From assembly GCA_943704425.1 (NCBI GenBank), contig CALSCP010000879.1, positions 1 to 33,756 on the forward strand: a DNA stretch of 33,756 nt, read 5' to 3'. Below are positions 123 to 17,791 of this stretch, piece by piece; position 1 is the stretch's first letter; each line of letters starts with the position of its first letter. The position numbers and the translations under genes are program-made. Source of the stretch: Ministeria vibrans ATCC 50519. Lineage: Eukaryota > Protista > Filasterea. The notes beneath the pieces are model-generated. The model made no database searches. It was not told the DNA's origin and worked only from the letters and a program-made list of their open reading frames with translations.

Positions 123-3100
123 TCACGCCACGGCAATGCACGGTCCGTCCAGTAGCTTGGCGCGCGAGGCCACCTGGTCGACCGCGTACTCTGCAAGGCA
201 ATTGATTGCCATATCGTGCAGCTGAAGAGTGCCGTCACACGCAACCGTCACAAAGCGCTGCAAGGGCGCTGGCAACATAACCAGTTCAAGCAACTTCCCG
301 TGAAAAGACGTCTCCCTCTTCACCGGTTGTAAGGTGTCCACGTCGAGCAAACACAGCGCAAAGTGAGCGTCTTGCGCTACCAGACGCGTGGGTTCATCGT
401 CGACCTCAATGAACCCCAGCAAGTTCAAGTACAAGGTATCCTCAACGGTACCTAGGCGAAGTAGCGTGTCCATAGCGCAAACACAAAGGGCATTGTCGCG
501 TTCACCAAATCTTTCAAAACATTCAGACCGCATTGCCATCAGCACCGTCTGTTTGTCCGGCGACACGAGCACGTAACCCACAGGGCCACTCAAAACACGC
601 ACAACGGAGAGAATATCGCCCTCAGGAACACTCACCAAAGCTACAGTGCCATTGGCCAGCCCGCAGAGCGCATGCGCCACTGTCAGAGCCACGCCAGATA
701 TGGTCCAGGGAAAGGTGACCGATAAGGCTCGCGCGTGACGTACCATGTCGTATCCATGAAGATGGCACGCTTTGGACGCAACAAGAAGCTCGGCGGTAGC
801 GGCAAATAAACTACATTGCGCTACCAATGCAGGCAAGTCCTCGTCGACTGACGCACCGACGAGGCGCAACGAACCACTCTCCGCATTGTACACTAAAAAG
901 GCTTCAACGCCCTGCAAAGCAATCACACGCTCACACATGCCAGATGTGGGTACAACTCGCACTTTAGACGCAGTCTCTTGACCAAGGCGGTAGAGCAAAT
1001 CTCTCCAATGCTTGATAAAGCTGCCAGCTCGCCATTGCTGCTGATGTGCAAGTTATCCTCTCCATAACAGTTAGCAGAGACACGAGCAAGGCACACAGGG
1101 GAGTTCGCGCCAAAATCGGCATCACGCGCAAGATGCATGGCAAGCAGACGACTACCAACGTAGAAGAAGGCGCGTGAACCGTGCATCGCAAAGCCAGAGC
1201 ACACTTCCATATCAACCCTATTTACACCGTGGATGACATCGGATATCTTTCGTTCCACCGTGCAATTGACCGTGTCAACCACAAAAGGAACATCTCGAGG
1301 AAAAAAGCACATCACGCGCTCGTTGTCGATAAATGCCGCGAGATAGGGTGCCTGGATGCGGTGCGCAAACTTAGCAGAGGAGATCATGCGGTCGCGTGCG
1401 GCCAAGTGCTGCAGCCAGGCACGCCGAGGCAGCAAACCCGCACCTGATTGACGCAGCACCTGTTGTGCGCCTTCACGAAGCCCGCGGTCGTCGGTCTGAG
1501 AAATTCGAGAGAGCAGCTGAAACGCAAGTGCGGATGCCCGTTGGATCTTGCCATCCCTGGCGATAGACGGTTTTGAAAAACTCCCACCCCCATCCATTGC
1601 TAGATCACGCACCACCACACGCAACTGTGCAGCGCCCGGGTCACTGAGCTGCTCAACGAGCGCCTCGCTCAGAGTCGTAAAGAGCATGTCACAGTAGCCT
1701 ACAAGTGCGCACGCGTGCAACAGCCAGTTGAAATCGAAGAGCAAATCCAAGGCATCCGTTAGCAACTTTGCGCCGATCATATGTCGCGATACGACATGAC
1801 GGTAAAAGTAAAGCGCCACGGAATTGATGGTGGGATTGCGCCACAAGAGATCTTCGGGGTCGGGGTCGAGAACGGGATCGCACAGCAAGGGCGCTTGCGG
1901 CCAGGAGGTGCCGCACCACTTGCGAAGCGCGTCAAACGTCTCTTTGTGGTGCTGTTCGATCGCCTGGTAACCGTTAAAGTGCGCAAAGTCCGCCTGCAGC
2001 TCGTGCAGCGTGTAGTATTCGTCGTTGCTGCACGTGAGCATGGACAAGTCAACGAGAAGACCCGCAATGTGGGACGCATCAAACTCCATCAGCGCAAACT
2101 CATGTTCGGTCGCATGCGCCTGCCAAAGCACACGGAGCAGTTGGCATGGGATGCGCTCGCCCTTAGGAAACACGCACAGCTGCGCGTAGCATGTGCGTAC
2201 ACAGTCGCACAAATCGCGCTTGTCTGCAAGCGCATCAAATGAAACATCCAGCGCCGCACTGATCTGCACGCTAGAGTTGTCGTGGCGATAGTGCGGCTCT
2301 CTGTGCTTAAAGGTGTCAACCCATCGGGGACCAGCCTTGCGCAGACTGGCGACACACGCGCCCCAATCACCCCGCCGCTTTGACACCGAGGCACCCAACA
2401 TGGCAAGAGCCAGTGGCAAGCAGCCGCAGAGCTGCGCGAGTTCGTTGGCGGCTGCCTCTTCAGCAGGTGACATACCCCCCTCCTTGCGCCTCGCAAACTT
2501 GTGCAGCAGAGCCACTGCATCTGGCAGCGCCAGCGACTCGACGCGCTCAACGAAGGCGTCTTCGGGCACAACTTGAGACAGTCGCGTTGTCATGACAAAC
2601 TGCACACAAGGATGGTTGGCAAAGCAGCGCATGAGCGGCGTCAGATCCTTCACGTGCCACACGTTCTCAGCAACAACAAGCAGCCGTGCGCCGTTCCGAG
2701 TGAACCTTGTCGCCGCATGGCGGTTGATCCAGTCGACGAGCCAGTCGAAACGGTCTACAGGCGCACTGCGGCCCCACTTTTTCTCACATTCTGGCTCGAG
2801 TAGCTGCGCTAGGCAAAGCAAGATGTGCGCCATGTTGATAGAAGTCTGTCTCATGCCAAGTTGCACCCACACGACAAGGTCAAAAGCGCTACACACGCGC
2901 GCATGCCGTGCCACCGCCGTCGCGAGCACCGTTTTGCCCACGCCTCCCATCCCCACAAGTGCTGTCACGCGCGGGGCTTCCTCGGCTGCAACGGTAACCA
3001 CCAACTTGGCGACCTGCTCAGTGATCATGTAGTGTGGCGGAAGCGAGGGCACCTCAAAGTCCGAGATGACGACGGTCCGAGGAGGCGAGCGTGCCTCCCA

Positions 3101-16200: not shown

Positions 16201-17791
16201 GCGGACGTTCGCGCATCTCCAAAAGAAGCTCTCTCTCAAAGAGCGTATCGATCAGGGTCTCGCGTAGAGCCAGGTCCTCCACAACAACAAGGCTCGCGTC
16301 CACATAGGCACGCTGCTCACTCTCACACGGCCCTCGGAGCTCAAACTCGTGCGTGGGCTGGCTTTGGGGCGCATGAAATCGACGTGACGCCACAATGACC
16401 AAGTGTTTCATTGCAAGCGCCTGGAGCGCCGCTGAAAGGGAATGGAGTTGCTGGATGCCCTGATCGCCCGAAAGCACGGCGGGTGTCTCGTCAAACGAGT
16501 CGAACACAAACACACAGCGCGCGCTGCGAATTTGCTGTCGGAAGAAATCCTCAAAGGCAAGGCGCTCGTACTCGCGACTGCGCGCCATGAATTCGACAAG
16601 ATGAGTCACAATGAGAGTAAGGAATGCCTGATAGTTCTCGTCGTCGGGGTCGTTGTGGTTAGGAGTGCTTGGCACTGGCATGCGGCCTCGAAGTGTGCCG
16701 AGATCCACGAAAATGGTGAGGCTCTGTGCGGTCGAAGAGGAAGAGGAGAGTTGCGTCTCTCGCTGAACAAGTTGTTCAGCCACCGCGCGCACACATGCCG
16801 ACTTGCCGCTGCCTGCGTCACCACTTAGAAGCAGAAAACCTTGTGAGTTTGTGCGTGAGTGCTGTACCAGCATGTGGGTCACGTCGAGCCCGATGTTGCC
16901 GTTGTTGCTGTATTCAAGTTTCATCAGAGGTCTGAAAAAGTATAAATAAAAAAACTCGAATAAGCAATGATTTCGCCTAAAGATGTCTTCTAGTTGGTTG
17001 ATCACATACCGATTGAGTCCGAGACGAAGGCGTTGTGTCTCAACAAGCGATTGGAGAAGGGCATCAGCATACTGCTGCTGTCGGACTCGTGTAGCGACAA
17101 TGCGAACACCAAGGTCACGAGGACGACGTGCGCTGACTTGGGCGTCGAACTGTGCCGTAGCAGTCGCAGTAGCGGTGGTAAGTGTCTCGCGCAATCTTTT
17201 ACACGCCCATTCGAGCGAGTCAGCACTTGACGCTTCAAAGTGGGCGACCCTCTTAAGCAGTACTTGGAGACCCTCACACAAAGTCTCTGCTGTAAAGTCA
17301 AGCTTGTCGTGATCTCGATGCGCAATAATGTTTCGCCAATTGCGCGCGTTGATCGCATCGGCTTTGACGGCCTTTGGAATGAGTTTGTTGAAGCAAAGAA
17401 AATTGAAAATGGCTGACGCATCCGCTGCCTCGACACTCTCAAATCGAGGAGAGGATGGTGAGAGAAACACGTGAAACACCTCGAGGGGACTGCTGAGCCA
17501 TAGAGAGGGATTAGAGTGGCGCAGGGTTGGGTTGTTTTTTCCATGCAGATTCACGAGCACTTTGTGGCGAATGTGGCAAGGCTTGCACCTGGAGCGCGAG
17601 GAATGACTGCTGCTCTGGTCGGTGGTGGCATGAGATACAGGCTGACGGCAAGTGCATGGGTCAGGACAGGCACGTTCAAGTTGCCGGATTGTTGCAGCGA
17701 GATACTGCTTGCAGACAGGAATAAGTGGAGTACTGGTCGATTCAGTAAGATCGGAGCACGTGCTCCATTTGATGGAATCAGGGAGGTCCAT
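13253..17791 (-). CDS. STAND protein: CXorf38/DUF4559-like HEPN, NACHT NTPase, helical region, ~9-pass transmembrane C-terminal module
   Basis: N-terminus CKPC..LH..HSNPSLW..PLEVFHVFL..DASAIFNFL..RNIIAH. NACHT motifs LLLSGDAGSGKS, VFVFDSFDE, VIVASRR, RPLLLSL, FWHRRLLESFAAEYL. About 9 hydrophobic segments at ~14710-13530. Probable in-frame 78-nt intron at 16932-17009. Confidence 0.85.
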   Translation of the reverse strand: MDLPDSIKWSTCSDLTESTSTPLIPVCKQYLAATIRQLERACPDPCTCRQPVSHATTDQSSSHSSRSRCKPCHIRHKVLVNLHGKNNPTLRHSNPSLWLSSPLEVFHVFLSPSSPRFESVEAADASAIFNFLCFNKLIPKAVKADAINARNWRNIIAHRDHDKLDFTAETLCEGLQVLLKRVAHFEASSADSLEWACKRLRETLTTATATATAQFDAQVSARRPRDLGVRIVATRVRQQQYADALLQSLVETQRLRLGLNRYVINQLEDIFRRNHCLFEFFYLYFFRPLMKLEYSNNGNIGLDVTHMLVQHSRTNSQGFLLLSGDAGSGKSACVRAVAEQLVQRETQLSSSSSTAQSLTIFVDLGTLRGRMPVPSTPNHNDPDDENYQAFLTLIVTHLVEFMARSREYERLAFEDFFRQQIRSARCVFVFDSFDETPAVLSGDQGIQQLHSLSAALQALAMKHLVIVASRRFHAPQSQPTHEFELRGPCESEQRAYVDASLVVVEDLALRETLIDTLFERELLLEMRERPLLLSLTCEFITRRFESGECCVDNLLPQSPHLVLSGWCTTMLKSVECEALELEELLLVAYACGMVAQISGQQSWLLHELEADVRELLQARRWDSAACVTSIALRTLEERGVLLSVHTGAAMDYVGDAEGDDDPEHRVCFWHRRLLESFAAEYLLALPTSELPPDLLKNDAWEHVVALLLDQCARTPQSVVHSELLLWFLEQGTLRCRELIRQRGNTAHFELASDSDKQLCERLKVFLEGAPCHGESDAVESAWTRRVATLAATCLQRVRVASRNCCRSHHLELVSVHDVERDCDDDDDRDDAYGHRLVVEKDNERLMVEHCNFLLNVFSGVGRIGAPEHAVDAHERFQRAALELVVCVGRDRQGDWRFQDVLLKSAGVLCMTATKIVLSAALKNSFFRDAAIATIFHLQMVQLPEFVAEMQWKIAECVRNPDCIESRPLLCPFMWSDLYTSLYEKRVKEQNRCDNEIKRLRHQFAQVDPDIVSPNIWGAFHLLDRNGRWVFWFRFLMVVGVVFAFAWSIIDFISWPNFRQTPLVATLVLLTFPLLLAGSIPPAFRSIPIVALLSLCTWLVVFSPTFPVYRNVTFDMSSACNGTIKEWVYNPGGYCDRYFDEFLPWDGTWIQYDSSCTGGSTAQFQCCWFTPYYTVERTSSHNSTVSCEMASSDLYVGDAVSCLIVAMMFWMAVAAAFWREFMRVLIRGSHHQLMRASAVFPAALFGVLGFIVVACTCSPANKIHQHRLKDTNQSLFAPVVFSFLALGAAFAILVECTRAFGLHALLEPLVAVLGASVAVSVFASLTVFIFPPDHLDRSTFKAGGFFLRALWHQQRRWLLFGVFTTIAALSYVGFYLLRANVIASGPLTSSLASTYLRLFAVACALLGVVVSIVVCVVAGLLVHLCGVGSSRWKTMDSLCSGSLERLEKALRNPRLEVAEREVVELLAGEAQCLSSGSIESVRHWTVQYRARSDVIEECLFGLQKKMYRELLVR

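Follow-up and report, generated by a model that had tools for sequence, protein, structure and literature searches.

CXorf38/DUF4559-type domains joined to STAND NTPases in Ministeria vibrans: a candidate family of HEPN-STAND fusion genes

Do two large genes on either side of a giant receptor tyrosine kinase (RTK) in a protist genome constitute an innate-immune or cell-death locus, and is the domain which they share a ribonuclease (RNase) effector? This question is raised by contig CALSCP010000879.1 (assembly GCA_943704425.1) of the filasterean Ministeria vibrans ATCC 50519, of which a stretch of 33,756 nucleotides (nt), hereafter the window, was analysed. A sequence-only reading of the window had claimed that both genes begin with a HEPN domain like that of human CXorf38 (DUF4559, Pfam PF15112), joined to two different nucleoside triphosphatases (NTPases) of the STAND class, and had proposed that sensing triggers RNA cleavage. 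In our nomenclature, gene 1, gene 2 and the RTK lie on this contig (C879), and paralogs are named by their contigs (C1907, C716, etc.). With a confidence slightly better than even, we consider the two genes to belong to a lineage-specific family with about 18 loci, whose members join an N-terminal CXorf38/DUF4559-type HEPN domain to a STAND NTPase and would act through oligomerisation-activated RNA cleavage. The fusion of this effector to STAND NTPases is known; what is new is the lineage, together with the membrane-embedded architecture and the APAF-like partners. No new principle is involved, as a 2013 description already covered both the domain family and its fusions to STAND modules.

A family of CXorf38-type fusions in the genome

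The genome-wide census of domain partners that the sequence-only reading had suggested was performed by running a lineage profile (A2) of the protist HEPN domains over the 29.7-Mb genome. The two genes are not an isolated oddity: 18 loci with a CXorf38/DUF4559-type domain were found, 16 of which adjoin an NB-ARC, NACHT, AAA_16-type or APAF-like module, and their members are the following.

NB-ARC/APAF-like: C1907, gene 1, C1982 (clear WD40), C1329, C2424, C2574, C312 and C277 (APAF1_C and WD40)
NACHT with 8-9 transmembrane (TM) helices: gene 2, C716, C2792, C572 and C2192
Soluble NACHT/NPHP3_N: C2290 and C1887
Weak AAA_16: C1569
Solo or cut: C2170 and C1579

The signature D...FL...RNxxxH, with the RNxxxH motif and the upstream acidic D that mark the family, was found in 16/16 copies retaining the motif region, despite an overall identity of ~20%; Walker A is intact in every copy checked, and the NACHT domain of C716 scored 51.4 bits. 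Across eight aligned genomic copies (both genes and six others), W, D, FL and RN..H are invariant. The HEPN N-termini of gene 1 and gene 2 align at ~19-22% identity, and their motifs stand exactly where they had been read, RNVWAH at 3347-3364 and RNIIAH at 17318-17335, both on the minus strand. Of the Cys residues of the HEPN insert, gene 1 and C1907 keep only three, and some paralogs have no more than one CxxC. Genome-wide, we counted at least 29 NB-ARC and at least 13 NACHT matches, partly overlapping and mostly within open reading frames (ORFs) of 800-2200 amino acids (aa), and roughly a third of the genome's STAND genes bear the CXorf38-type domain. For so small a genome (29.7 Mb), this is a large STAND repertoire. 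No leucine-rich-repeat (LRR) family was matched in gene 1, gene 2 or the scanned paralogs, whose C-termini are TM, WD40 or unassigned; judged by sequence, these proteins would fall outside the strict animal definition of a NOD-like receptor (NLR), which is NACHT plus LRR. The 256-aa ORF of C2170 (L011:5864-6631) is nearly the same as the HEPN domain in the HEPN-NB-ARC gene of C2424 (L017), and represents either a HEPN protein on its own or a recent duplicate that was cut short.

Family membership was found in both search directions. All nine domain pieces examined matched PF15112, with HEPN_Swt1 as the sole other recurrent Pfam match (4/9, best E 0.0058), and several paralogs scored above the PF15112 cut-off too. 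The protist-domain profile, scored against 1.84 billion representative proteins at E <= 0.001, retrieved 330 proteins; the long matches tested were all DUF4559 proteins (42/42; best E 2.8e-103), two of which also matched HEPN_Swt1 at 2.4e-5, and their partners were dsRBD (21), NACHT (13), NB-ARC (5) and nSTAND3 (3). The shared N-terminal domain claimed for the two genes is thus borne out by these PF15112 matches, for gene 1 via C1907. The kinship with HEPN also agrees with the literature, in which CXorf38 was set up as a new HEPN family within the Swt1-like group, rated 'active' and bearing an RNxxxH motif (PMC3710099). Members of the family carry a Zn ribbon in the domain and are fused to NACHT, DEATH, CARD, ankyrin and dsRBD modules, such fusions being recorded in vertebrates, Saccoglossus, Branchiostoma, Ciona and Nematostella (PMC3710099), and for the human protein the active site was predicted as RNEIMH plus D134 (2026 preprint). 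The HEPN assignment and the HEPN-NACHT fusions are therefore prior knowledge from 2013 and are not new; the sequence-only reading had itself granted that HEPN-STAND fusions were known in some invertebrates.

Gene 2 is the intact representative in the window, and its features are given below.

13088-17791, minus strand: transcription unit (ATG 17789-17791, TGA stop 13253-13255, poly(A) site ~13088)
17078-17650, minus strand: CXorf38/DUF4559-type HEPN domain (PF15112, aa 48-238)
~17576-17668, minus strand: four-Cys, Zn-ribbon-like insert in the HEPN domain, with conserved Cys columns of the animal family at the same place
17318-17335, minus strand: RNIIAH, predicted Rx4H catalytic motif
16932-17009, minus strand: intron of 78 nt, GT-AG (joint 16931/17010; CT..AC on the plus strand)
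16370-16864, minus strand: NACHT/AAA_16 STAND NTPase core (Walker A GDAGSGKS, Walker B VFVFDSFDE)
13529-14692, minus strand: C-terminal module with ~9 TM helices (hydropathy scan, aa 1034-1421)
~14201-14488, minus strand: Cys-rich loop with N-x-T/S sites between TM3 and TM4 (hydropathy scan)

Gene 2 is a genuine, spliced and polyadenylated mRNA, since a transcript contig shows both the splice joint and the poly(A) tail: the run X5 contig (4635 nt) spans 13088-16931 and 17010-17782, skipping 78 nt, and its 18-T loose end at 13088 is the poly(A) tail. Two further runs, X17 and X20, contributed contigs that map to the gene; one is an RNA-labelled run from 2011 and the other a marine poly(A) metatranscriptome. 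The intron (donor GGTATGT; T-rich acceptor ...TTTTTCAG) lies between the HEPN/linker part and NACHT and, because it is in frame and stop-free, is concealed within a single ORF of 1512 codons (13253-17791), which yields 1486 aa once spliced. Our searches used the unspliced ORF, including the 26 intron-encoded residues between domains, and the exons were joined in a script for the length and stop check only. The position of the intron (between LG.xR and.LMKL) is the same in gene 2 and C2192, and the ORFs of C2792 and C572 break there (paralog intron and breaks at L021:1863-1947, L019 ~1940-1960 and L020 ~2021). P0151, a protein derived from Logan, agrees with gene 2 as far as the intron (16932-17009) and then diverges in the T-run, which points to an intronic indel polymorphism in another data set.

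The encoded protein runs from the HEPN domain with its four-Cys insert through a coiled linker, NACHT and a helical region to the module of ~9 TM helices. PF15112 was matched at 29.3 bits against a cut-off of 27 (32 bits in a second search), and the insert pattern C..C.C ... C..C coincides with conserved Cys columns of the animal DUF4559 family, with metal binding being putative; a word-indexed homology search with the HEPN region was blank or uninformative. NACHT plus a multi-TM module, as claimed for this gene, was borne out, though narrowly for NACHT: AAA_16 was above cut-off (34.5 bits; cut-off 32.6), NACHT was borderline (24.2 bits in hmmscan, cut-off 26.7; 28.3 bits in a six-frame search), and Walker A and Walker B are intact, the latter as read from the translation. 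Genome-wide, the TM module is confined to the five NACHT-TM genes, with an identity to gene 2 of 39-42% in C2792, C572 and C2192 and 24% in C716. No relatives of the module were detected in an alignment-based, word-indexed search, and the ESM Atlas gave no usable match. The HEPN-NACHT-9TM architecture is a candidate new type of membrane-embedded STAND receptor.

Gene 1 is spread over three frames (ORFs 3157-3864, 923-3697 and 123-998, all on the minus strand), was searched piecewise throughout and never repaired, and extends beyond the window start, which is the contig end.

3586-3864, minus strand: first piece (ATG 3862-3864, N-terminal helix of HEPN, 93 codons; PF15112 positions 1-89)
3579-3586, minus strand: first frame break in an A8 run, one base lost relative to C1907
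3107-3589, minus strand: HEPN core with RNVWAH at 3347-3364 (PF15112 positions 59-237; 162.9 bits to profile A2)
1985-3016, minus strand: NB-ARC (2375-3016) and APAF-1-like winged-helix domain (WHD; 1985-2197)
998-1013, minus strand: second frame break (tblastn frames switch at 998, C1907 residues 959/960 contiguous)
3-998, minus strand: C-terminal region with no assigned fold (73% identical to C1907 aa 960-1291 of 1457)
123-125, minus strand: in-frame TGA, at a site with Cys in C1907

The comparison is with the C1907 paralog, which is intact (1457 aa in one ORF), colinear with gene 1 and 70% identical in amino acids and 81% in nucleotides. Two pieces of gene 1 from two frames match PF15112 weakly (16.6 and 14.1 bits), C1907 matches it at 44.5-47.8 bits, and the first piece of gene 1 is 63% identical to C1907 aa 1-97. 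The claim of NB-ARC plus a propeller was only partly right. NB-ARC is firm (E 1.8e-24, 86.8 bits, cut-off 23.5; Walker A GMGGVGKT), followed by APAF-1-like_WHD (E 3.5e-5), with a Walker B region that reads as non-canonical (LLVVAENVW). For the propeller, the C-terminal region gave no WD40 signal, C1907 showed a faint beta-propeller match only (E 0.0056), and in phmmer the C1907 C-terminal region had no similarity to the WD40 regions of the paralogs; a word-indexed search with the gene 1 ORF returned only distant NB-ARC-WD40 and TIR-NB-ARC proteins. The notion of one effector joined to two STAND classes with different C-terminal modules therefore stands, with gene 1 as a disabled member in this assembly. 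Next to C1907, tail to tail, lies an ORF (L008:2-1063, C1907 ~7500-8560) bearing the tyrosine-phosphatase active site HCSAGVGRSG, an adjacency which is probably due to chance in a genome rich in phosphotyrosine genes.

Where a single frameshift had been assumed, we found two frame breaks (for the second, nucleotide alignment shows a net non-triplet indel near 1013) and the TGA, and TGA is a true stop in M. vibrans, as the reading frame of gene 2 closes with this codon and its transcript is polyadenylated 165 nt further on. Gene 1 thus looks disabled in this assembly. Its ratio of nonsynonymous to synonymous substitution (dN/dS) against C1907 is 0.33 at dS 0.50, which is indicative that purifying selection acted on the gene over most of its existence; the lesions arose recently or are in part errors of sequencing. 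Could the gene be intact in the organism, and the lesions be errors of assembly or sequencing? We find this somewhat unlikely. The first break, a one-base loss in an A8 homopolymer, would suit such errors, as would the 2011 source runs, which are small, as 454-type runs are (inferred from run sizes), and the long-term constraint together with just three lesions in 3.8 kb is also in favour. However, a homopolymer error could account for no lesion but the first. The second break lies outside any long homopolymer, the third lesion creates a genuine stop by base substitution, and no intact near-identical gene 1 protein was found in public collections. The metagenome scan gave 0 matches to the A8-run site.

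Proposed mechanism and competing explanations

STAND NTPases oligomerise in a nucleotide-dependent manner, and HEPN RNases use a composite Rx4H site formed across domains. Effector-STAND-sensor logic is the most economical reading of the family: a ligand or a disturbance of the membrane would be sensed by the C-terminal module, the STAND core would then oligomerise in a nucleotide-dependent way and gather the HEPN domains, the juxtaposed domains would create the composite Rx4H active site that HEPN ribonucleases typically use, and RNA cleavage would arrest or kill the cell or destroy invader RNA. Both the RNase activity and the immune role are proposed by analogy with such systems.

Several observations weigh against this proposal. 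The AlphaFold2 model of the C1907 domain is all-alpha (predicted local distance difference test, pLDDT, 83; predicted template-modelling score, pTM, 0.81) and is compatible with the HEPN fold predicted for these domains; Foldseek with the C1907 domain model against PDB, however, returned nothing at E <= 0.001. VIA-align, in a wide run and a second look, placed HEPN structures within the noise of helical bundles (Swt1 C-terminal domain 4pqz, Z 5.7 over 116 residues; AbiF 8vz6, Z 5.3 over 154 residues; HEPN toxin 7ae8, Z 4.3), and a PDB sequence profile search reached Csx1-Crn2 at E ~0.5-0.9 only, aligned over RNxxAH. In the literature searched, RNase activity is undemonstrated for any member of the CXorf38 family. 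The model of the TM module is poor (pLDDT 51) and unsuited to structure search, and since the module has no relatives and could not be modelled, the label 'sensor' is a guess from its position in the protein. Gene 1 carries its three disabling lesions in this assembly.

The lack of a demonstrated RNase among CXorf38 proteins suits the explanation that the HEPN-like domain is no nuclease, acting instead in RNA binding or as a homotypic adaptor or oligomerisation domain, like CARD, Death or PYD in animal NLRs; such an adaptor could recruit solo HEPN proteins or bind RNA as a signal. The combination of the domain with dsRNA-binding motifs in 21/42 long animal relatives, the candidate solo copy in C2170 and the proposal that human CXorf38 is autoinhibited (2026 preprint) point in the same direction. 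Yet the invariance of R, N, H and D in 16/16 copies at ~20% identity is hard to square with a pure adaptor, and the family was listed as 'active' in the 2013 classification (PMC3710099), and we consider a non-nuclease role unlikely.

Alternatively, the TM branch, including gene 2, could be an Ire1-like sensor of membrane or organelle stress rather than an anti-pathogen receptor, its HEPN RNase serving RNA decay or splicing. Ire1 and RNase L are HEPN RNases which are switched on by oligomerisation, and by analogy with them a multi-pass membrane module joined to an oligomerising NTPase and a HEPN domain would be a fitting design. The branch has five paralogs only, which at 39-42% TM-module identity are less diversified than typical immune sensors, and transcript contigs occur in unchallenged, culture-type data. 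On the other hand, no sequence link to Ire1/KEN was found in Pfam scans, a STAND NTPase fused to a death or effector domain usually belongs to a conflict system (PMC3710099), and lineage-specific expansion, varied C-termini and a decaying copy are typical of immune gene families; we consider a stress sensor unlikely, too.

Lineage and relation to known systems

The genome of 29.7 Mb contains two T-box loci, at least 20 SH2 matches and TK-type kinases, and looks like that of a unicellular, non-animal holozoan, in keeping with the protist host that the sequence-only reading had assumed. The same DNA was found in seawater and algal-culture metagenomes. Named database relatives of the domain are animals in all 20 cases among 30 looked up (fishes, amphioxus, corals and bivalves). 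For two abundant metagenomic matches, P0067 and P0109, a bacterial origin was considered and rejected, since they are gene-sparse contigs with a single long ORF from Tara/JGI samples and are eukaryote-like. In a quick maximum-likelihood tree, 70 database domains and 15 protist domains were split by one branch (SH-like approximate likelihood ratio test, SH-aLRT, 93), and the protist HEPN subclades track the STAND partner (NACHT-TM clade, support 95; one NB-ARC clade, support 100). This tree, which is unrooted and has long protist branches, argues against a recent transfer from an animal; vertical descent is not proven by it. DUF4559 is not strictly animal-only in the literature, because a Dictyostelium B-box/FNIP protein with DUF4559 is on record (PMC4554924).

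Compared with the animal CXorf38/DUF4559 family, the protist proteins share the Pfam family, the RNxxxH motif with the upstream D and the position N-terminal to STAND NTPases, and the Cys-rich insert is retained in gene 2; 13/42 animal matches carry NACHT and 5/42 NB-ARC, and in a clam DUF4559 occurs on 45/99 NACHT proteins (PMC8298618). They differ in that the host is unicellular-holozoan-like and its copies cluster apart (SH-aLRT 93), in that the 9-TM module is missing from the Pfam tally of the animal matches, and in that no dsRBD, DEATH or CARD partners were seen in the protist. Like the AP-ATPases APAF-1 and CED-4, gene 1 and its relatives have NB-ARC, an APAF-1-like WHD and an APAF1_C helical domain, to which C1982 and C277 add WD40 propellers; unlike them, they begin with HEPN instead of CARD, the C-terminus of gene 1 and C1907 lacks a clear WD40, and the Walker B region of gene 1 is LLVVAENVW.

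The likeness to Ire1 and RNase L is a functional analogy only: sensor-driven oligomerisation would activate a HEPN RNase, and Ire1 and gene 2 are both membrane-anchored, but here HEPN is N-terminal, a STAND NTPase takes the place of the kinase or pseudokinase as the switch, and there is no similarity to KEN, itself classed as a HEPN domain (PMC3710099). With bacterial HEPN-STAND fusions, which are on record (PMC3710099), and with Avs and bNACHT, the effector-STAND-sensor logic is shared. The likeness to Avs/NACHT defence proteins invoked by the sequence-only reading failed at the level of models, as PADLOC matched no family at E <= 0.001 for gene 2, C1907 or C716; the HEPN family is a different one, and the metagenomic matches lie on gene-sparse, eukaryote-like contigs. 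Cnidarian DZIP3/hRUL138-like HEPN-NACHT proteins likewise bear an N-terminal HEPN on expanded NACHT repertoires (PMC8260672), but that HEPN is Pfam PF18738, which 0/9 protist pieces matched even at E 10.

Human CXorf38 is an uncharacterised protein that is predicted to be a HEPN RNase, and CXorf38-type NACHT fusions make up a sizeable share of invertebrate NLR repertoires, their function being predicted only. Bona fide NLRs were concluded to be metazoan-specific in a 2013 survey (PMC3879445). Given the expanded and expressed set in M. vibrans, the pairing of this effector with STAND NTPases may be older than animals. Conceivably, receptors that pair a CXorf38-type RNase effector with a STAND NTPase arose before animals and would be the main NLR-like arsenal of a unicellular relative, including a hitherto undescribed, membrane-embedded HEPN-NACHT-9TM class whose extracytoplasmic Cys-rich loop would gate a cytosolic RNase; we put this forward tentatively, as a doubtful but possible extension. 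If true, it would be a transmembrane 'NLR' for which neither the scanned animal relatives nor the models of bacterial defence provide a counterpart. With its small genome, M. vibrans also offers a compact natural set of architectures (APAF-like, soluble NACHT and TM-anchored NACHT) for testing whether the RNase is turned on by oligomerisation.

Neighbouring genes

The kinase between the two genes is real, as had been claimed, with EGF repeats, a TM segment and a kinase domain; it is an unrelated neighbour of gene 1 and gene 2.

5868-12643, plus strand: EGF-repeat RTK between gene 1 and gene 2, outside the family (EGF, hEGF, EGF_CA, EphA2_TM-like segment, PK_Tyr_Ser-Thr)

It is spread over four ORFs (5868-7565, 7569-11588, 11595-11960 and 12308-12643), the first three of which share one frame and are split by single in-frame stops (7563-7565 and 11586-11588) for which nonsense codons, very short introns and errors are all conceivable. 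A GA-rich repeat, which translates as RERERE, occupies ~11800-11960, ahead of the last kinase exon (12308-12643).

The part of the original claim that made a system or locus of this arrangement found no support. A co-regulated innate-immune island of all three genes, with the kinase receptor signalling to the two STAND proteins, draws on adjacency alone (gene 1 and RTK head to head, RTK and gene 2 tail to tail) and on the tyrosine-phosphatase ORF beside C1907, and is highly improbable, as 18 loci in 29.7 Mb would be expected to give ~0.14 pairs within 14 kb and hence one pair ~13% of the time, no contig except C879 has two copies, gene 1 and gene 2 are deep paralogs in different subclades with HEPN domains ~20% identical and not tandem duplicates, the genome is compact and phosphotyrosine-rich (at least 20 SH2 matches), and gene 1 is broken.

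Elsewhere in the window (20865-22178, minus strand) lies an ORF like a bacterial-type glycine-tRNA ligase (tRNA-synt_2b), with bacterial glycine-tRNA ligases as the nearest Atlas clusters. On another contig, C2677:32421-34376 (minus strand), SH2 (34149-34376) and NACHT (32421-32936) were found in one open frame of 1575 aa, a possible SH2-NACHT fusion which would join phosphotyrosine signalling to a STAND switch.

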